Of a stretch of DNA of 64,000 nt, positions 7,435 to 60,330 are shown piece by piece. Under the pieces are notes generated by a model. It worked only from the letters and a program-made list of their open reading frames with translations, was not told the DNA's origin and made no database searches. Origin of the DNA: Dicyema japonicum (Eukaryota > Animalia > Dicyemida); assembly GCA_011109175.1 (NCBI GenBank), contig RDEW01000031.1, positions 62,001-126,000 of the forward strand, written 5' to 3'. The translations under genes were made by a program, and so were the position numbers. Position 1 is the first letter of the stretch. Each line of letters begins with the position of its first letter.

Positions 7435-8549
7435 GTGTGCTTATGAAGTTTACTAATCTATTTATCTTTTTTAATTAAAATATAATAAAAATGATTTGTA
7501 AAATTAATTTTATTTAATAAAAATTATTCAAAAGTACTATTTTGACTTTTTGATAAATTTTATTAAATTACATCATTGTGAGTGTGCTTCTTCATCTCCA
7601 TTACCAAGATAACATCTGTCCAAGGATTTTTTGTTTGTTCCACTCGCCGTTGAGACGTCTGGTTCCCTTGCGAAGGAATGCAGACAGATGCTTTAATGGT
7701 ACTTAAAATTAGTCAACATATTTAATTGGATTTTAATACATAAAATCTTAAGATTATTGATTTAAATTTGAATAAGATATTTATGATTTCAATAATTTAG
7801 GAGATCTACATATTATATAACTTTATCATTAGTCTTCCCCACTCCACTGGAGAGGTTTCCACAACTGCATGTAATGGACGTCTTACCTTTTATACTGATT
7901 CCGGATGGACTCTGTTAATTATCCGGGGTTAATAACTTTATGATAGAATTTAATCTAATTTATTTGATAACTCGAGATATAGTGGAAAGAGGATTATAGT
8001 AAATTAATTTCTACTAAAGGTATGTCCAATTCCTACGATCTGAGTTAGATACATCGTGTTCAAACATCACGGCCATCCATTGTGGGAACCCCTCTACTAT
8101 AGTAGTGAAGAGGTAGATCTTTTTTGAATACCTTCCATGGATTATGTGTCCCCTGAGTCAGATAAATAATCTCAATATTCGAATTTTAATTGTCATTAAA
8201 TCATTTTATTATTTAAATTTTGATAGAGCTGTTTAATCCGCTAATGCTATAAAGTGGATTTAATAATTATGAAAATACTCATTTCTTAACTATTAAAGAA
8301 ATTCATTTGAAAAATCAAGGATGATGATTAAAGAGGTATCGGATAGCTTAGGTAAATCTCTCTTAGGCCTTTTCAAATTTGGGCAAGTCGAAAAATCTTG
8401 TTAATTCGAATGGTCGTAAAACCTGATAAAAAAGCCTTTAAGTTATTGTTTAATGTCATTACGGTTACACTAAAATAAACGTTACAATAATTGACTTTTT
8501 TTTCTTTTTAATTTATTAAGCCAATTATTTGTTGAGGTGGTGACAACGC

Positions 8550-20239: not shown

Positions 20240-20535
20240 CAGGTGTCGGGCCAGAGACGTGATTGTACCTAATTTAAATCCCGCTTCTGTACATTTCGGT
20301 TGAAAGTTCCACGCATCTATGATTCCTTGGCTTGACGATTGACGGCGTCATCAGTGAACATTTCACTGCGGAACCGGATCGTCTATAAAGGACATACATC
20401 CAACAAAAAAAATAAGAGCATTCCTTGATTCTCCCTTCACGATTAGTTACAATAACTGTTCTTTACTTAAAAATAAAGTGCATGTCCTGCCTGAGCGGAG
20501 CTATAACTAATATGGTTCTGCGTAAAATTGCAGTT
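20240..20535 (+). mobile_element. tRNA-derived SINE family 1, copy C (head degenerate)
   Basis: Colinear with 33024-33332 and 38025-38295 over the body (GTTCCACGCATC...CAGTGAACATTTCACTGCGGAAC...GGAGCTATAA). Confidence 0.85.
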
Positions 20536-21869
20536 TTTTAATATCACGTTATACTTTAAAAATAAACAAAGTCTATCGCAAAAATATTGAAGAGAATCGG
20601 TTTAATAATAGAACTTTGTATTACATATCTTCTCAATGTGAGAGTTATATTTTTTAAGGAACTGCAGCTAAAGTAAGAGTTTAACTGATATTTTAAGGAA
20701 CATTTAAAACTTCTTAAACGGTTCGGAAAATAAAAAGATACAATTGTAAAAAATTTAAAAAATTCTAAAAGTGTTTTGGTTTATTAATTTTAAAGAACTT
20801 TATAATTTCGATTAATATACTTGTAGCACACATGAAGTTTGTATTAGTTAGCACTCTTGATTTCTCCTTGATCTTTTTATGTTCATTTCACTCGTTCCCA
20901 AACCTGAGGCTAACTAATTTTAGGAAGAACCGAAAACTAATTAACAGTGTTTCGATATTCTCATGGGTTATTAAAATGAAAAACTTAATATTTCTTTTTT
21001 GAAAGACCTTACTTACATGTTACATCTCAGATCTGTATTTTTCCTTCTTCGTTAATATAGATCTCTAATTCAATCAACATGCCAATTTAATTTCGTATAA
21101 TCGGTTTTATCTAGTAGCTCAGCAAATTTATTTCTATTCTTTTATCCAATACCATCCTTGAAAGGGTTCAAAATAAATCCATCACTGCTAATTAGAATGC
21201 TGGTAAATTCATCGCATATTAAATTATTTACGAAATCACCAAATGAAGGATAGTTAATTTTTGTAGCGGCTGCAGTCGATCATTGGGAGTAGTTCACTAA
21301 CCCTGTTGAATTAGATCGGATAGAAATTGACTATTGACAGAGCAGCTGGCTATTGAACAAATTTTCTTACAAACGTGATGGGTAATGCATTTTCAATTTT
21401 TTGAGTAGAAGTTTTATTACGAGTCTCTCTAAAATTAGTAATTTTGTTCTTTATCGCCATTTTCATTAGATTTATAAGGCTGTTCTCTTCAGTGGTGAGC
21501 TCATTATTCATCTCCATCTTTAGCGCAACATTGAAGGCTGTTCTTGTCTTTTCTAATTGAGATATTATCTGGTTTTTCTTAGGGAAGTAGTAAGAACCAT
21601 CGCATCTGAGACAGAGATCTGTGAAGCGTTAGTTTTCTTCATGGGATGGTCAAAACTTTAAAGATTCACCATTGGCCGATGTTTATCTATTTGTTAACTG
21701 TTTTCCCTCAAAAATTATCATTAATGTGTAAATATGTTGCTGATAAGTTGGCTTATCATGTGGTGATAATTTCCTTGAATTTTGGAATTAATTTGATGGA
21801 ACCGAGAGAGTTGTCTCGCTTAAGATTCAAAGTGCACGGATAGTCTCTAACGCTAATCTTCTCAAGTCA

Positions 21870-22700: not shown

Positions 22701-24340
22701 ACCTGACGGCTCCACTCTTTTTTATTTTGTCTGTGATTCTGGTTTTAAATAAATATTAAGATATTGCAGCAACTGTACACTTGTCACGTTTCAAGCAATT
22801 TACTCATCACAGAATTAAAGACTTTTTGGAACTTCTCAGTATGATCTTCCATGATATAAGGTTTCTAACTCGTAAAAATGATTTCTTTCAGATGGAAATT
22901 TTTCTAGTCATAACGTTGTTTGTTCGATATTTTTTTACGAAAAGTAGCGAAAAGTCCAAGCTGCAAAACAGAATCAAAAACCTTGGATATATCCCGACAT
23001 GTAGCTAAATTTTTAATATTTTATTTTTACGTATTTTATCATATCTTTCTGACACCAGTAAAATTTGTGTCGCATTAACGTTTACAGAGATTTTTTAAAA
23101 ATATTTCCAGAGCACTCGAAACGTTAAACAATTATGTTTTTCAAAAATTTCATGGCAAAATAATTTTTCGGCTTTTTTGTTTCGAGCCATATTGATTAGT
23201 TTTTTAGAATTATTGCTGAAGAAGCCAACGTCGTTATTTGAATTAAGCGTCGATCACAAAAGAAAATTTTCAAATTCTCTTGATTTTAAAGTCGAGTTTA
23301 TGAACAATTTATCCGACCCACGATGACGTATGCAAGTCCTTAGTGAGCAATACAGATTTCACGCTCCTCGTCTTAGAAACTATCCACAATCCGGAAGGCT
23401 ACAATAAAGTTAATTGGACCTGGACATAAAATCTAGCTCAAAAAATTTCTCTATAGAATTACAACAGAAACTCTTAAAGGCGGCTAGTCTACCGAGCTGC
23501 CTTTTGTTCCATACACTATCAAAATATCTACAATTATACTGAAAGTTTGATCCGATGTCATGCCCGATTAGAAAAGCTGTATAGGATTCTCGACCCCGTC
23601 GGACTCGTCCTCTTTTTTTTCAGTCTGGGATCACTTAGTTAGTTGAGAACTTTTACTTCTTTCTCTTTGACCCAGTGATCCTGGGGTAACAAAAATGGTA
23701 GAATTCTAGAAATGGAGATTAAATATTCTTCTTGTTGTGTCCTTCTCGAAAATCCAATCCACCAATCTTCATTATGAGCTTCTGTTGTATGCTTTCTTAT
23801 GGAGAGTGATATAAGAGTTTCAACTCGATCCCGTATTTACATCACTGAAATTCGATCGTTAACTTTCCATATCGTGCTCACACTTTGTCGTATCTTCTTA
23901 TGGACGATGAAATTAAGTTCATAGTGAAGGAAATCAGATTCCAGTTACAGTAAGTCATATTCACTTGCATTTATATTTGACTTTGCTAGATTTTAGTATT
24001 ATGCAAGAAGCAGACGGAGACGCTGCATTTAATTAGATTATGGTATGACTGATGTGTCTTTGCATCTTCGCTAAGACCATGCACGTTGAATTAATCAAGA
24101 GTTATAGGCGTAGATCTTTGACATGAAGTACAATAGGATTTCATCACTTTATTTAAAAAAACTTAGAGAACTTGTGATGGTACAAACGACAACATTATTA
24201 TTATTAATAATAAGCCAAAAATCACTAGGTAAACACTAATTAATAGGAAAAGGCCATCAGGTGGTCCTAGTTTCTATCAGTTACATTCTCATCTCCTGTT
24301 GTTGCTCTCGGGAACCAACGACATTTATTTATTCATTAAC

Positions 24341-24647
24341 CCCGGATACACCGAGAAAAAAGTTAAAGTAAAAAACTGATTAAATGTATCCAGTTTCCAC
24401 TTCTACAGAAACAGAGGCCATCCATCCGACCGGAATCGACATAAAAGGAAAAAGACGTCCATACTTGCAGTTGTGGAAATCCCTCCAGTGGAGAGCAAAT
24501 GATCCTTTTTCGTGCCGGCTAGGCACTGGGCGCCACCTGGATAGGTGGTTCACATAAAGCTACTCTAATAGGAAGAGAGGAGAAACAGACAAACGAACAT
24601 AAAACTTAATCCAATTAGCCACGCAGCACCACATGGCGCCAAGCGGC
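24341..24647 (-). mobile_element. Short retroelement family 2, internally deleted copy with both termini
   Basis: 5' GCCGCTTGGCGCCATGTGGTGCTGCGTGGCTA leader, structured core at 24500-24552, 3' CTCGG-TGTAT-CCGGG stem-loop plus AATAAATAA tail. Confidence 0.7.
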
Positions 24648-27236: not shown

Positions 27237-27535
27237 AAAGTGCTTAGGCTACGGGTTCGAATCTCGCTGCTGTTCACCTGGTGGAAGGTTCCACGCATCT
27301 ACGATGCAGAAATGGTTTGACGAGTGACGGCCGTCAATCAGTGAATACTCACTGCGGAACTGGATTTGTCTAGAAGGACACTCAAACAAGAAAAAGAAAA
27401 AAAAAAGAAGTGAAGATCATTCCTTGGTTCTACGATTAGTTAAAATTAACTGTTCTTTACTTAAATAAAGTGTGTGTTCTGCCTATGCGGAGCTATAAAT
27501 ACTATGGCTCTCGTGAAAAGGGTTTATTATTATTA
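27237..27535 (+). mobile_element. tRNA-derived SINE family 1, copy B (5' clipped, B box retained)
   Basis: GGTTCGAATC B box; near-identical to 33024-33332; (TTA)n tail. Confidence 0.9.
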
Positions 27536-27616
27536 ATTATTAATTAAATTTAGTAACATTCATTTTTTATCGGGCAACCATAAAAAGTAATAAAATAGAT
27601 AGATTTAAATTTCAGT

Positions 27617-31339: not shown

Positions 31340-31440
31340 TAAACACTCTTCTTCAGCCGTATAGGGAAAAGAAAAATGGTTCTTTTCGGTGTCTTTCCAT
31401 ACTGAGCGCCACTACATAAGGTGAACCAGCTGACGCCACG
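31340..31440 (-). mobile_element. Family 2 structured head directly upstream of the RT fragment
   Basis: GGCGTCA-GC-TGGTTC-ACC...TGGCGCT...GAACCA, homologous to 39936-40000. Confidence 0.6.
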
Positions 31441-31646
31441 CTAACAGATCCATCTGATACGTGGTTTAATGATCTTTTTACCTTTAGTATTTTGAATAAT
31501 TTAATTTAATAATTAAAAAATTTCAAGTAAGATATTGGATCATAAAATTAACTACAAAATAATTAATTAACAAATAAAATTAAAAAAATAAATTAAATTA
31601 AATAAAACATTGCGCGTAATTATTATTATTTCTTGTTGTTTAAGTT

Positions 31647-33023: not shown

Positions 33024-33332
33024 CAGGTGGCATAGTGGTTAGGTGTCGGGCTTAAAGTGGCTTAGGTTAGGGGTTCGAATCTCGCTGCTGTTCACCTGGT
33101 GAAAGGTTCCACGCATCTACGATGCAGAAATGGTTTGACGAATGACGCCGTCAACAGTGGATACTCACTGCGGAACTGGATTGTCTAGAAAGGACATTCA
33201 CACAAGAAAAAAAAGTGAAGATTATTCCTTGGTTCTAAGATTAGTTAAAATTAACTGTTTTTTACTTAAATAAAGTGTGTGTCCTGCCTATGCGGAGCTA
33301 TAAATACTATGGCTCTCGTGAAAAGGCTTTAT
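33024..33332 (+). mobile_element. tRNA-derived SINE family 1, full-length copy A
   Basis: A box TGGCATAGTGG (33028-38), B box GGTTCGAATC (33072-81), (TTA)n tail, 14-bp TSD TATTATTTAGTAGT (33010-23 / 33333-46). Confidence 0.93.
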
Positions 33333-33509
33333 TATTATTTAGTAGTAATTTGCTGTCGGGGACCTAAAATTCTCTATTGCTACCAGTGCATCGAATTCGG
33401 TGTTTTTATATCTCTGTCTCCGCATGAATTAGCTGTTCAGATGGTGTTGTTTGGCCCCATCTCCCCTTTTGTTCCTCCGATTAATACAACCCAAATTTCT
33501 GCAATAATT

Positions 33510-36045: not shown

Positions 36046-36711
36046 AGAATACGGTTGTTAATTAGCGCCGCCCTCCAGAAAAATTAAGGTATAGCTCCTT
36101 CCACAATTCTCTACTTCCGATGGCGTCATAGATACATTCAATCCAGAATAGGAGTTGAGGACCGTATCTATCAAATTCTTCGAGTAGCTATAAGAGGACA
36201 AATATGTACTTAATGCGACATAATGCGACATCCGAAGGTAAGGTAATTCCCAATCTTCCAAAACAAACATTAGATTTAGATTTATTTTTAATCTCATCCA
36301 TGTTCATGAAAAAAATCGAGATGTGGATTTTCATCCATTATGAAGCGAAGTAGACATTTCGTGCAATAGAGCTCCACCACTGCATCAACTCTCTCAACTA
36401 ACTTTTCCAATATAAAATGAGAAAGTGTCTGATTTACAAAATATCATGATTCAAACCTCGTCCGGCCCCAATTGAAAGAAACTGTAGTCTATATGTCTGA
36501 ACTTCACGTATAGGTGATGGTTAACACGATTCTATGTATGCTCATTAATAAACTTGAAGTGGAAAACTTAAAAAAATTTCACACACTTGAATGAATTTCC
36601 AAGATTAATAATATTAATTGTCTGCATGAATTACAATTCATAATGTATTAATAGATTATTCAAATTATAAGTAACCATTCTAAATCTAATAGAATGTTTT
36701 GAATGTTTCTA

Positions 36712-38024: not shown

Positions 38025-38295
38025 TGGTGGTGCAGTGTAATGGGTGCCAGGCCTGATGACCTGAATCCCGCTGCTGTAATTTTTGGCTGAAGGTTTTACG
38101 CATTTAATGCTTTGGCTTGACAAGTGACGCCGTCATCAGTGAACATTTCACTGCGGAACCGGATCCTCTACATAGAAGTAAAGACTTGGTTCTCCTCAAT
38201 GATTAGTTATGATAACTATTCTTCACTTAAATAAAGTGTGTGTCTTAACTTGTAGGAGCTATAGCTAATATGGCTCTTCGTAAAGTGCATTATTA
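38025..38295 (+). mobile_element. tRNA-derived SINE family 1, copy D (second subfamily)
   Basis: Body homology to copies A-C; 13-bp TSD TTATCGATTATGA (38012-24 / 38296-308). Confidence 0.9.
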
Positions 38296-38479
38296 TTATC
38301 GATTATGAATAACCTTAACGTGCGAGGATCAAAGTAATTATTAATATCTGACATCAAGGTTTAGTAGTTTAGCACAAAAATTATTAAATCAAAGTGATTA
38401 TTCAATCTAGAGACATTGTGGTTTATGACTAAATTTATTTATTGTTGAAACAGAATAAACTAAACAAAAAAATCATACA

Positions 38480-39520: not shown

Positions 39521-40064
39521 TTTACCTTATATTTCTCCCCATTACACGTATGGTGATTAAAAATCCGACACAAGTCCATCCAGCACCTGCTTAAAAAGTG
39601 GAAAACGTCCATTCCTCGCATTTGTGGGAACTCCTCCATGGATTGAGCGAGAGAAAATAATCTTTTTACGTACCACCCGGGCACTGAGCTCCACCTGAGA
39701 GAGATGGATCAGATGACGCCAGTCTATTCGAAAAGGGAAAATGATAAACAGAAGAGACAAACAAAAATCATCAATCAAGTAGCCAGTCACATAGCACCAC
39801 GCGGCTAATTCCCCAATATTAAATTAATTCCAAAGACCAATGGTAGCCAAACTAACTAGCACCTTGATCCTGACTAATTCCAGCATTTCCAGAGCTTGTC
39901 TCCAGGTAACGACATTGTCCCACGGAGAAGAATGCTTGGATCCTCTTGATGCCGGGCCAGGCATTGGGCGTATCCTCAGTAAGGTGGATCCAATGACGCC
40001 ATCAGAAGAAAGGAAAATCATTTACGGGCAACTAGCCACATAGCACCACATGGCACCACGCGGC
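39520..40064 (-). mobile_element. Two head-to-tail copies of family 2 (39520-39805 and 39825-40064)
   Basis: Both start GCCGCGTGG on the minus strand and share the GGCGTCA...GATCC...TGCC..GG(C/T)A core. Confidence 0.75.
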
Positions 40065-40849
40065 ATAATCGCGAAAATATTTAATCCAATTAAACGGTTT
40101 GTAAATAGTTTTTTTCTATATTTTTAAAAAATTTTTATTTCATGAATAATCATATAATTAAAAAAAACTTGTTAAGTTGAGTTAACCGGATCACATAATT
40201 AAATTGTTATTCCTTCTTTCTTGATGTTCCCTTTTCGGGGTTAGATAAAATAATAATAAGTTGAGTTAACAGTTAAATGTTTGTCCTGTCTGTGCGGAGC
40301 TATATGTAATGCTGTTAAAAAATTAAGTTAGTGAACCGCCCTTGAGTCTCTGAATAAAAATACTGAAACTTACTGACACTACACATAAAGTGGACACAAG
40401 AGACCATACGTCCTGTATTTCTCTTCCCTATCTAATCTGTGACAAAACAAAATTACCTTATATAAGACAAGATTTTATAAGTTATTAATATTTGCAGGCG
40501 TACACAACAGATTGAGAGCTACCCCTCTGATCACCAGTCCAATTTCTAGTTTCTGGAAATGGCAACGTGGCGTCAAATAATTCTTCTAATGTGACCAGTG
40601 CCAATGGGCATGAAAAAAAACCAAGTTATTTCTTATTTCGTCATATCATGGGGTAACTCCTTTCTTACCTGATCTGTTGGCTGTGTCTGACATTTTGCAA
40701 TTGAATGTAAATCAAAAGCAAAGTATTAGGGTTGCCCGTCCTAATGACTTTTCATAGACTGGACATGGCAGTAATTTATGAAATAAAACTCTCCAATTTA
40801 ACATCCGCACTTTCCTAGGTAAGTAATAGTTTGAAAAAATTCGTGACAA

Positions 40850-46399: not shown

Positions 46400-49060
46400 A
46401 ACTTAATCCCCCTTGGCTGAATGGGTTGCTGATAATTCTCGCCGGTGACATTGAACTTAATCCAGGCCCTCCACTCTCAATTCTGCAGATAAACATCAAC
46501 GAAATCAAAAGCAAAATTCTCGAACTACGGTCTTTCATTAAATAACAGAACATTGACCTGATTTTACTTCAAGAAAGCAGACTTACTCCATCATCACCTA
46601 CCTCGCATTTCCAGGATACCATTGCATCCGTCTGGACCGCTCAAACCGTCGTGGTGGGGGTCTCCTCGTCCCTATAAGAAATAGCATTCGATTTACGGAC
46701 ATATCAGCAAAACTAAATTCATTAACTAACGATGGACCACGGAAATATCTGGAATATCCATTACAAGCGCATTCGGGACTCTCAAATTTACAAACATCTA
46801 CGTCTCCCCTCCATCTTCTTGCCCAAAAGGATTCTCTCTAAACCTAACCAAGTTAAACAAGCTCGGAAACCTGATACAGTGTGGAGATTTCAATGCTAAA
46901 CATCCTGCCTGGTTAAAATCACATCCAGCAGACTCAAGAGGATTATCCTTATTAAACAAACTCACCTATCTGACTATCCTCAACAACTCCAGGAAGCACA
47001 CTAGGACTCCTTACAAGGAAAACGAAGCTTCAACGTCCCCAGACATTACCTTCTGTTCCCCAAACCTTGTACCGGACACATCTTGGACATGCATTATGGA
47101 TTATTTTCCTCCCACAATCCAATCATTATTCGAATCAAAAAAGTTCTTTACCACAGAAAAGAGACTGTTTTATTTTTCAACTATAAAAAAGCAAACTGGA
47201 ATGACTATTCAAAATTATCGATCAAGCTTTAGTAAACTTTGATATGATATTCCTTTCAATAGATATAGCTATTGACTTTCTAAACAAAATTATTCTCATG
47301 GCGCGGAGAACATTCATTCCGCGTAGATCATTTAAATTCTACAATGAAAAACTTGATCAGAACACCAAATCATTAATTAAAGAAAAGAATCGCCTGAAAA
47401 GACATGTACCTTCCTTTTCCGGACAGAAAAATCAAACAAAAACTCTCAATGACGAAATATCTAAAAGGATTAAAAAACTGAAGCCAACAGATGGGACAAA
47501 CTAATATCTTCCCTTCCATTTCAGAAATCTGGTCAGACAATATGGAGAGAAATTAAACAATTTGGTCCAAAGGGAAATTTTAAAAGACAACAGACGGATC
47601 AGCACAGTCTTAACAAGCTCATGAAATATTACGCCAGTCCTCAGGACATATGCAAGCCTCTGTACGTTGAGGCTGTTCTTTAGGAGGAATAATGATGTAT
47701 CCTTGGTATTTTACTAAAACACCTTGGACCTATTGCGATTGATACAATCACAGTGATTTTCAACTATTCAATAACATGAATACAATTCCAACTATCTGAA
47801 AAATGTCCTATATACGCCCAATCCTTAAGCCTGGCAAGCCTAAAAACAATCCTGCATCATTTTGAACAGTCTCTTTACTATGCACCTTATCAAAGTTATT
47901 GTAAAAATTGATTCTTAACCTAATAACTTCGTCCCTTCCTTTTTCGTTCTCACAACATGGATTTAGAAGGGGTCATTCAACTTCTACCCACCTAACTTCC
48001 CTTAACCAATTTATCATTGAAGGCTTTAACAAAAATCCTCGTCACCTCAAAACAGTCGTTTGCTCGATCGATTTACAAAAGACCTTCGACTCTGTCTCAC
48101 GGAAAATCCTAACTTGGAAATTGTTTGTTCTCCTTGTCAACTCCAATATAAAACTTTGGCTTGCTAACTTCATAAATGGAAGAAGGGCCCGGGTATACAT
48201 GGATGGGATCAAATCAATTTCAAGATTACTACCCAATAATATCCCACAAGGTTCCCCTTTATCACCCGCCTTATTTAACTTATACATGTCCGATTTACCA
48301 CAACCCAATAATAAAGACGATTTCATCCTATCATATGCTGATGACTTATTAATCGGATCCTGCGATCAAGATATCCCATGGGCATCAGAAAGACTACAAG
48401 AATACCTTCACAGGATTCAAATTTTGATAAATTATAACCGGCTTGATATATCTACTGAAAAATCTTCTTCGTCTTTATTTACCTCAGACAAACGACTTGG
48501 ACAAATGACAGTGGATATATTTATCAACCAGACAAAAATACCTTTCACTAAGAAACTAAAAATCTTGGGATCACCTTCGACACACCCTTTTCATCTCATG
48601 TCGACGCTGTCTCTGGAAGCTGCTCAAGAAAGCTAGGGATAATCAAAACTATTTTCGGTGGCATTAAAACCCCTTTCCCAGCTTTGAAATTGTTGTACAA
48701 ACAATACATTGAGTCATCTGTCAGCTATGCTTGTACGTCATGGGGAATCAATTTTTCCTGGACGAACAAACAAAGAATCCGGGACATTCAGGCCTTAACA
48801 GCCACTACTATTAGTAATCTCGAGAAACTAGTAAAACTAATACCCTCATCACTTGAAGTGGAAAGAAATTTGCTACCCTGTGCAAGCAGTGCAACTCTCA
48901 ACAATACACAGTCACGACGTGTCTTATGAGAAGGGTATACATCACCCCTCTCCAATTCCTATTCCCGTAACCACCCCGCCCACAGAGAAGTTGTGTTGGA
49001 TCCCAGAAGCGCACGAGGAGAAAATGAGAATTCTGATTGAGGCCTTCGAGATCACTTAAT
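46400..49060 (+). mobile_element. Near-complete decayed APE-RT LINE ORF (Ingi/I-group) with an N-terminal 2A-like motif
   Basis: LLIILAGDIELNPGP (46426-46470), ILQININ, DLILLQES, GDFNAKHPAW, IDLQKTFDSV, PQGSPLSPALFNLY, SYADD. Confidence 0.9.
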
Positions 49061-52397: not shown

Positions 52398-52704
52398 ACA
52401 ATTAACTTTAATTTTTTTAAATAATAATTTAAATTTTTAAATTCTTTGTTAATTTTTTTAATTTAAAATCATGATTTCAGAGGAATTTACATGCAGCTTT
52501 CAGATCTACAATTTACAGGGAATTTTGAATTATATCTAAATACTGCATTTTTTCATTCTATGTTGATCAGAGAATATTAGAAATCACGATTTAAGAAAAC
52601 GTGCTATACGTCCAAATTCTGGATCAGGGTATTATGGAAAATCAATTCACATTAGGTATTCTAATGGCGAACTTGTACAGACACCTTCAAAAAATAAAAA
52701 ATAA

Positions 52705-52930
52705 TTCCAAAGACCAAGGGGAAAACCAAACTAACTAAATCTTTGATCCAGCAATTCCAGAACTTGTCTCCAGGTAACGAAATTGCTTCGTGGAAAGAAT
52801 AGTTGGATTCTTTTGATGGCGGCCAGGAATAGGGAGTCTCCTTAGTAAGGTGAATCCAATGACGCCATCAGAGGAAAAGGATATAATTATTTAACCATTA
52901 GACACATAGCACCACATGGTTCCACGCGGC
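52705..52930 (-). mobile_element. Family 2 short subfamily copy
   Basis: Colinear with 39825-40064 including both ends. Confidence 0.8.
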
Positions 52931-52999
52931 TATCCGAATCGAATGCGAAATACAACTTAATCAAGACAGGCAAAATACAAATTAATGAAAAAATTCGAG

Positions 53000-54382: not shown

Positions 54383-55153
54383 ATGAAATTTCAAGGAATA
54401 ATTTTGACATTTTCATTATTTTCAGTAATATAATTTTAGATATTTATTTTAAAGTTCTTGTGCTGCGGACCGCCTTCTGTCGGTATTGAAGATTTAAATT
54501 TATTTTAGCTGTTGATTACCGACTAAGTAAAGCATGATTTTATTAATTAGCCAGTACAAATCCAGATGACGAAACTCAAATTCGTAATGGTGGAGAAACT
54601 CTTTTGGTGGTAATTAATTCTAAAAAATACACAGTTTGCTGATCAAAATGAGACAGACCGGAGTGGGACACAAACCAATCGAAATGAAAAATACGTCAAA
54701 CAGAACAGGAGACATAAAAATCAAACTAAAAAATTCAATGACCTAAATGGGAGGCATACTAATCAAAATAAGACTGACATCGACCTCAAAGTGACACACG
54801 CGACTCAAAATATGACATACATAGGGCGAAATGTGACATATTCCAATCAAAATAAGACAGATGTCAACGAAAAGTGACATTTACCAATCAAAATAAGACT
54901 GACGCCGACCTCAAAGTGAAACTCGTGACTCAAAATATGACATACATAAGGCGAAATGTGACATATTCCAATCAAAATAAGACATGTCAAACGAAAAGTG
55001 ACATCTACCAATCAAAATAAGACTGACGCCGACCTTAAACTGACTTATCTAAATCAAAATAAAACAGACGTAGACCGAAAAGTGACATATGTAAATCAAA
55101 ATAAGACATACATTGGGCGAAATGTAACGTACACCAATCAAAAGAAGAATTAA
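54383..55153 (+). CDS. Orphan secreted protein with nine 14-aa tandem repeats (5 exons)
   Basis: Four GT-AG micro-introns (54425-54, 54483-508, 54527-50, 54610-34) join in frame; hydrophobic N-terminus MKFQGIILTFSLFSFLCCG; 42-nt repeat from 54761; two indels in the repeat. Confidence 0.75.
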
Positions 55154-59879: not shown

Positions 59880-60330
59880 CATTTTATAAGAAAGACAGAG
59901 ATTAAACAGGTGTCCCCGAAGATTCTTTAGTGTCAAAATTTCGTTTATTGATGAGTAAATGATCCTTTTTCGTGGTACCCAGGCACTTGGCACAACTTGA
60001 GATTGGTGAATAGCATTAGAACAAGGGAAGAAAAGGAACTAATGCAAGGAAAAGAAATCTTGACCAAATAGTCAATAAAAGGAATCCAACCCACGGAGTA
60101 ATGTTAGTGGCATGACAACTACTAAGGTAACTTATTATATCTCGTTATTTATTTATTTCTTTAGAATCCCGGGATCACCGAGAAAGATAGAAAAAACACC
60201 AGACAGTTAAGTATTCCCAGTTCACGTAATCAACCGAGCCATCCAACTTCTGTGGTCTTCCATTGTTCTCACTACCGTGCGAAAGAGCTTTCTCTTATCC
60301 TTGTAGAGGAATCCGATTTTGGACCTCGTT
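59880..60330 (-). mobile_element. Two family 2 pieces (59880-60040 with the structured core; 60168-60330 with the 3' stem-loop)
   Basis: AAATGATCCTTTTTCGTG shared with 24498-24515; CTCGG-TGATC-CCGGG terminus. Confidence 0.7.

Follow-up and report, generated by a model that had tools for sequence, protein, structure and literature searches.

A pseudoknot with the HDV-ribozyme helix order at LINE 5′ ends of Dicyema, probably captured by SINEs as a promoter and structural module

Introduction

HDV-like folds at the 5′ ends of LINEs are usually read as 5′-processing ribozymes. In HDV-like ribozymes, P1 starts with G1 at the cleavage site, usually as a G1·U pair, P1.1 typically joins GG with CC, and J4/2 has the form C-N-R-A; in those borne by retrotransposons, the 5′ end of the element or its RNA is the cleavage site. 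Such features of HDV, CPEB3 and drz, and of the 5′ ribozymes of R2, RTE and Baggins, are reportedly those set out by Webb et al. in 2009, Eickbush and Eickbush in 2010 and Ruminski et al. in 2011.

A 65-nt sequence from Dicyema japonicum, on the minus strand at 39936–40000 of the window (the whole 64,000-nt stretch analyzed here, AT-rich eukaryotic DNA that contains a reverse-transcriptase ORF), raises the question of whether an HDV-like fold at such a place also signifies HDV-like cleavage. The original prediction had read the sequence as part of a ribozyme-bearing non-autonomous element; we found that this is indeed a non-autonomous retroelement with an HDV-like domain, one that it has in common with LINE 5′ ends, but that the 5′-processing role is not supported. 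We consider it probable that a hallmark domain of LINE 5′ ends was captured by SINEs, in which it would serve both as a promoter and as a structural module, without setting the 5′ end through cleavage.

Anatomy of the Module and of Its SINE

In its family-A form (minus strand, 39936–40000), the module reads GGCGTC A TTGGATCC ACC TTACTGA GGA TACGCC CA ATGCC TGGCCC GGCAT CAAGA GGATCCAA and constitutes a double pseudoknot of the HDV topology, which is matched by a covariance model (CM) over 39930–40008 with 93.2 bits and for which nested folding gives P2, P3 and P4. The P1 5′ strand GGCGTC (39995–40000, with G1 at 40000) faces TACGCC at 39967–39972, with which it forms five of six pairs in this copy; most family-A copies have GACGCC as the 3′ strand. 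P2 comprises 8 bp between TTGGATCC (39986–39993) and GGATCCAA (39936–39943), and is also recovered by nested folding. The segment 39973–39985 contains P3 (ACC), L3 (TTACTGA) and P3′ (GGA); the P3 that had been described as ACC/GGT is found as such, or as GCC/GGT, in families other than A, but family A has only CC/GG together with an A·A mismatch. The earlier description also combined a P3′ GGT with a 7-nt P1′, which counts one T twice: the fold has either a P1 of 6 bp with a P3 of 3 bp, or 7 bp with 2 bp. P4 is a hairpin of ATGCC, a TGGCCC loop and GGCAT (39949–39964), evident in the sequence and in nested folding, and is followed by the J4/2 segment CAAGA (39944–39948), which holds the candidate “catalytic” C and takes the form C-N-A-A-A-A(A) in families other than A.

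The module is embedded in a family-A SINE copy (39824–40065, minus strand; E = 1.9e-76 in an nhmmer search whose profile comprised 30 copies from the genome) composed of a head, a pyrimidine-rich spacer, the module, a body and a tail, and the borders of this unit (~240 bp) are where homology among the 30 family-A copies ends. The head, GCCGCGTGG(T/C)GCCATGTGGTGCTATGTGGCTAGTTG at 40029–40064, is not tRNA-, 5S- or 7SL-like, with ARAGORN finding no tRNA in the window and Rfam giving no match. The alignment of copies places the spacer at 40001–40028, and its 3′ end is a diverged leader (..CTTCTGAT) directly 5′ of G1. Within 39573–40065 (minus strand), the family-A SINE and a family-B-like SINE stand head to tail with 13 nt between them, the B-like copy being downstream (39573–39810; BLAST with a family-B copy; module 39651–39728, G1 at 39720, CM 57.5 bits).

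Copies and Families

With a CM built from P1, P3 and P4 only, P2 being left out of the structure, we recovered all six of the minus-strand copies for which the HDV helix order had been claimed, at 24493–24569, 31370–31445, 39651–39728, 39930–40008, 52797–52874 and 59953–60030, with E-values from 7e-30 to 6e-10. They fall into family A (the copies at 39936 and 52803), family B (24500, 39659 and 59960) and the headless family C (31377). The second family-A SINE copy spans 52701–52932 (nhmmer and CM) and has a P2 of TTGGATTC/GAATCCAA in its module, the family-B SINE copy at 24324–24647 (BLAST and CM) has a decayed P1 5′ strand, and the family-C module (CM match) has a P2 of TGGTTC/GAACCA and a G1·U pair, with no SINE head. 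The copy at 59953–60030, a decayed family-B module on the minus strand, was found by the CM (E = 5.8e-10) though it is absent from the seed alignment; the earlier description of it as the more decayed copy is correct for its own P1 5′ strand, but that of the copy at 24500 is decayed as well. The form TGACGCC, which had been given for P1′ of the window copies, is absent from them; it is what most family-B copies outside the window have. All of these window copies are decayed insertions that individually need have no function.

Beyond the window, the CM gives ~50 more copies in 355 kb of genomic DNA searched, and further families emerged from pattern searches of the whole assembly in which the matched letters were compared. 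The SINE families A (~250 bp) and B (~330 bp) are present in hundreds of copies in the 67.5 Mb of assembly searched, with at least 752 candidate places for family A; assembly-wide, B-type and related modules with both P2 strands intact account for 652 pattern matches, and family H for at least 42 copies. Besides A, B and the LINEs, at least six further repeat families have the module; the carriers distinguished are the SINE families A, B, D and H, the headless families C and E (the latter young and abundant), LINE-1, LINE-2 and L2c, and also G. The single metagenome match that we obtained when looking for the module in other organisms was rejected as chance, as it has no CM score.

Two partial copies were also noted in the window. 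At 7825–7916 (plus strand) there is a 5′-truncated family-B copy, 94.6% identical to the copy L047, which begins inside P2′ (ATCATT...) and is an ordinary random 5′ truncation rather than a product cut at G1. At 36100–36131 (plus strand), an isolated fragment, CTTCCGATGGCGTCAT, runs from the last part of a family-A spacer through the 5′ strand of P1, without the remaining module.

The Fold Is Maintained by Compensating Changes between Families

Recurrence of the module alone amounts to common descent, because the copies are homologous repeats; since single copies decay neutrally, it is compensation between families that constitutes the relevant signal. P2 provides this most clearly: it is TGATCC/GGATCA in family B, TTGGATCC/GGATCCAA in A, TGGTCC/GGACCA in L2c, TGGTTC/GAACCA in C, D, E, G, LINE-1 and LINE-2, and TGGCTC/GAGCCA in H, with TGGTTC/GGACCA as a G·U intermediate. 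These states, taken assembly-wide, are all compensated, and three of the six core pairs are altered on both sides. In P4, almost all families have a hairpin of their own, with compensated stems (GTGCC/GGCAC, ATGCC/GGCAT, ATATAG/CTATAT, GATAC/GTATC, TGTGG/TCACA, AATGC/GCATT, TTCC/GGAA, GTGT/ACAC). The pairs quoted in the original prediction for P2 (TTGGATCC/GGATCCAA, TTGGATTC/GAATCCAA, TGGTTC/GAACCA) and for P4 (ATGCC/GGCAT, GTGCC/GGCAC, GTGCC/GGTAC) are present in the sequence. P1′ follows G-R-C-G-Y-Y across families, varying only where a wobble with the constant GGCGUC survives. The one family-level double change in P1 is that of family H, from C3:G to U3:A, which amounts to a pair of CpG-type transitions and is accompanied by a new U·U mismatch.

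Pairing was evaluated in 23 non-A sequences against slid partners and 500 shuffles. Across all four helices, 85.9% of cells are paired as against 28–50% with slid partners, none of the 500 shuffles reaches the observed value, and 14 of 19 pairs have changed on both sides, which bears out the earlier claim that covariation supports the fold. P2 is strongly supported on its own (89.9% paired, 17 doubly changed cells, 0/500 shuffles), and P1 alone only moderately, with 79.3% paired, a value reached by two of the 500 shuffles, and 69.6% still paired in the −3 register. G·U cells outnumber A·C cells by 55 to 23, which identifies the sense strand as the folded strand and agrees with the strand asymmetry of G-U-compatible variants noticed before. 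Nested minimum-free-energy (MFE) folding yields P1+P3+P4 or P2+P3+P4 according to the copy, as expected because P1 and P2 are crossing helices, and its z-scores are weak (−0.1 to −2.4), which is likewise expected for a pseudoknot. The HDV-topology domain, with the helix order P1-P2-P3-P3′-P1′-P4-P4′-P2′, is accordingly real and conserved.

Two observations concern the surroundings of the fold. In LINE-1 and family B, but not in families C and D, the leader could pair with nucleotides located 3′ of P2′. Furthermore, a second conserved hairpin lies ~15 nt 3′ of P2′ and is followed by (A)CGG in L039 (3505–3535, plus strand), L048, L049, L036, L029 and family E; its stems (TCCAAGA/TCTTGGA, TCCGAAGA/TCTTCGGA, TCCAGA/TCTGGA and CCAG/CTGG) show compensated differences, and the 5′ region shared by LINEs and SINEs therefore has more than one structured element.

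The Module Is the 5′ Terminus of LINEs, and Part of It Recurs as the SINE Head

The CM also matches at LINE 5′ ends (L039:3417, plus strand; L048:6509, minus strand; L049:7014, minus strand), where the preceding flank is unrelated and ORFs occur within ~200 nt downstream of the module. Downstream RVT_1 domains are found in L039 and L049 and an endonuclease-like ORF in L039 and L048, as judged from motifs read in the translations. A BLAST search with the 5′ region of L039, a LINE-1 element, gave 42 places, and most of the full-length ones align from query position 5–11. The module is hence the extreme 5′ end of autonomous LINE families that also occurs in short non-coding elements of the same genome. 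Three LINE-1 5′ ends with identical upstream flanks (G000:C124:1041112–1041216, plus strand; C124:1059532–1059636, minus strand; C57:703165–703269, minus strand) belong to segmental duplications, among them an inverted pair separated by 18 kb, and do not represent separate insertion events. In the window itself, an RVT_1 ORF of a LINE lies at 47908–48636 (plus strand), with no module at a plausible 5′ end upstream of it.

Directly before G1, families B, C, D, E and H and LINE-2 have the leader TTAGAGT, TTAGCGT or TTAACGT; the forms overall are TTAGCGT, TTAACGT, TTAGAGT and TTCTCGT. The conserved leader that had been noticed upstream is present, but what was seen as one leader is a short LINE leader that comes after a second, incomplete copy of the 5′ part of the module itself. 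This incomplete copy is the SINE head, whose general form is ATTAGCCGCGTGGCG(T/C)CATGTGGTG: in a family-B copy, the head has 19 positions identical to its own leader and module start, with one 3-nt gap, and 17 contiguous identities to a LINE 5′ end. By these alignments, the head is a shortened duplicate of the 5′ terminus of the LINEs, comprising the leader, the P1 5′ strand, J1/2 and the start of P2. Because the head duplicates the LINE terminus, the layout of SINEs A, B and D can be given as a fragment of the LINE 5′ terminus, a pyrimidine-rich spacer, a complete LINE 5′ domain, body and tail.

The part reused in the head is the 5′ strand GGCGTCATGTGG, which hardly varies. As it stands at the extreme LINE 5′ end and is duplicated as the SINE head, we predict this stretch to be an internal promoter; at the DNA level, the first ~25 nt (the leader TTAGCGT with GGCGTCATGTGG) would most likely set the transcription start.

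Does the Module Cleave Itself?

The strongest rival to this explanation is a working variant HDV-like ribozyme that cleaves some of the transcripts 5′ of G1, e.g., for uncapped translation templates, with only the uncut RNAs yielding progeny. It would accommodate the HDV helix order with its covariation, and there are LINEs, L1Tc for one (PMC3185411), that have an HDV-like ribozyme at the 5′ end. The nucleotides about the would-be cleavage site also conform to it in part: U(−1) and G1 are conserved, G1 being found in LINE-2 as well as in families A, B, C, D and H, and in family C and LINE-2 alone it forms a G1·U pair, as compared with G1:C in families A, B, E and H; J4/2 has C followed by purines in all families; and GG follows P1′ in family E. 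The U at −1, G1, the G1·U of LINE-2 and family C and the J4/2 C make up the pattern of an active HDV-like ribozyme and speak against a non-cleaving reading; because they persist, partial cleavage of some transcripts could occur.

The leader, which is kept in every family, speaks against the ribozyme. The flanks of families E and C, LINE-1, LINE-2 and L2c become unrelated only 2–10 nt upstream of G1. Among copies with an intact GGCGTCATGTGRTYC, 615 retain the leader beside G1 and four lack both G/A at −2 and T at −1; at most three of these four could start at G1, so that copies starting there make up ~1% or less. LINE-1 (at least 40 copies) has spread with AACGTC/GACGAA, i.e., without G1 and with the two outer P1 pairs missing (A1 and A2 are unpaired), and with P2, P3 and P4 kept.

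The interior of the fold also departs from the HDV-like form. P1′ is followed by CA in families A, B, C and H, by AG in D, by AA in LINE-1 and by GG only in E, and L3 offers no consistent P1.1 partner, since a complementary dinucleotide is absent from the L3 of family H (AGAAAC) and occurs at shifting positions elsewhere. J4/2 is 5–7 nt long as against 4 nt; its C always stands 4–6 nt before P2′ and is followed by A's (CAAGA in family A), and in family B this C can pair within P4. The original prediction had itself pointed to the lack of the canonical P1.1 GG, the long J4/2 and the upstream leader, and was right on all three. A match to the HDV-like models of Rfam, which it had suggested as a check, was not obtained: Rfam 15 gives no match in the window at the gathering score, and its ribozyme models (HDV, CPEB3, drz) give none even at E ≤ 10 in four regions of 250–900 nt covering family-A/B, LINE-2 and family-B copies. 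Since every element keeps the very bases that self-cutting would remove, 5′-processing self-cleavage at G1 is not supported by the sequences and is unlikely; we regard the partially cutting ribozyme, too, as an unlikely account.

Two further structural readings were tried and rejected. A hammerhead (GGCGUC... CUGAGGA... GACGCC, like the Schistosoma core) has neither a stem I nor a stem II hairpin where these are required and no Rfam match, and a P1.1 formed by covariation of CA with UG was discarded as the partner dinucleotide shifts and is missing in family H.

The Captured Domain as the Favored Reading over a Promoter-Only Sequence or a Relic

Still less probable than the ribozyme is that the module acts solely at the DNA level as an internal promoter, with the helices a by-product of sequence conservation and the RNA structure functionless. 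That GGCGTCATGTGG hardly varies and serves again as the SINE head would fit this, and heads of LP-SINEs have been proposed as promoters (PMC4758252). However, such an account does not provide for P2 double changes that are compensated across 40–60 nt, nor for the compensation in P4; P1′ varies only at wobble-tolerant positions, G·U exceeds A·C, and the controls with slid partners collapse.

A relic, i.e., a LINE ribozyme or structure that formerly had a function, has become neutral in SINEs and pairs there through recent descent, appears just as improbable: it is true that individual copies decay without restraint, that family B often shows single uncompensated changes, and that family A has a weakened P3 and a diverged leader, but the SINE families A, B, D and H differ by compensated P2 and P4 changes, which argues that their master copies were constrained after capture.

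We accordingly return to the captured LINE domain with promoter and structural roles. The 65 nt at 39936–40000 would be one copy of the 5′-terminal “hallmark” domain of a LINE lineage, taken over by SINEs that parasitize those LINEs. Apart from the predicted promoter in the DNA, the sense strand of the RNA would fold into the nested double pseudoknot with the HDV-ribozyme helix order, and selection on master copies would keep this fold. The domain is probably related to HDV-like LINE ribozymes or descended from them, with cutting no longer required of it, and the retained fold more likely functions in RNP assembly or recognition by LINE proteins, in RNA stability or in translation.

Comparison with Known Systems

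In comparison with the HDV-like ribozymes, the module has the same helix order, a P3′ that abuts P1′, a P1 of 6–7 bp starting from G outside LINE-1, a P3 of 3 bp, an L3 of 6–7 nt, a variable P4 and a J4/2 that begins with C and continues with purines. Unlike them, it has no two-pair P1.1 (CA in place of GG, with no fixed partner), its J4/2 of 5–7 nt is not C-N-R-A, G1 mostly pairs with C in the SINE families, the element does not begin where cleavage would occur, and there is no Rfam match.

A parallel in arrangement comes from trypanosomatids, where L1Tc/ingi and their SINE-like partners start with 77 nt that are both a promoter (Pr77) and an HDV-like ribozyme (PMC3185411, PMC3383444, PMC4035085). 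The Pr77/L1TcRz of L1Tc, ingi, NARTc, RIME and SIDER resembles the module in being a domain of ~70–77 nt at the extreme LINE 5′ end that is common to non-autonomous partners, and in combining an internal promoter with an HDV-like fold, the promoter of the Dicyema module being putative. Unlike L1TcRz, which cleaves at +1 of the element and keeps no leader, the Dicyema module always keeps a leader of 2–10 nt; and, in a comparison by description only, the domain of SINEs A, B and D differs from Pr77 in being internal, behind a duplicated head and spacer.

In the LP-SINEs of mollusks, the head corresponds to the first ~68–70 bp of a LINE 5′ UTR (Matetovici et al. 2016, PMC4758252). Their 5′ domain is common to Nimb-17_LMi, I-3_DR and RTE-9_CPB, and a promoter has been proposed for it, with no RNA fold; the LINE families share only this first domain, and in scallop MESC SINEs, a C/T-rich stretch comes after the LINE-derived part (PMC4758252). 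Compared by description rather than by sequence, the module is like the LP-SINE domain in its length, its position and the C/T-rich stretch that follows, and in both cases the SINE head comes from a LINE 5′ terminus. It is unlike it in that the Dicyema head is only a fragment of ~25–35 nt, followed by a full second copy of the domain. The central domains of SINEs (CORE, V, Deu, Ceph, Meta and MESC) provide another likeness, also by description only, as blocks of 45–150 bp conserved in the middle of otherwise different families; for the Dicyema block, unlike those, an origin (the LINE 5′ terminus) and a pseudoknot can be named. Our literature search returned no paper linking HDV-like folds to LP-SINE-type SINEs.

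A topology kept by compensation together with a leader that is always retained makes a “delta fold” separable from “delta cleavage”, and suggests a second selectable role for the fold in RNP recognition, stability or translation, linked to the internal promoter. It also implies a route for the birth of SINEs, in which the head is recruited from the terminus of a LINE 5′ end and the core from the entire 5′ domain, and offers a hypothesis on the structure of the 70-bp 5′ domain, so far without explanation, that LP-SINEs have in common with Nimb/RTE LINEs. As a more speculative extension, which we hold to be possible though rather doubtful, the module might belong to an uncatalogued, widespread RNA family, a non-cleaving or barely cleaving relative of the HDV-like ribozymes that marks the 5′ ends of several LINE lineages and may equal the ~70-nt domain of Matetovici et al. 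If it were the same as their domain of locust, zebrafish, turtle and mollusk, that domain would gain a fold, and the reuse of promoters would be tied to a delta-type pseudoknot.

Other Repeats in the Window

A different repeat family, with the tRNA B-box-like GGGTTCGAATC, is found at 27242–27545 and 33060–33350 (plus strand), with related pieces at 20322–20552 and 38107–38310; this family is probably a SINE of tRNA origin that has no relation to the module. The window also contains a tandem array at 54657–55151 (plus strand) with periods of 42 nt and ~125 nt.
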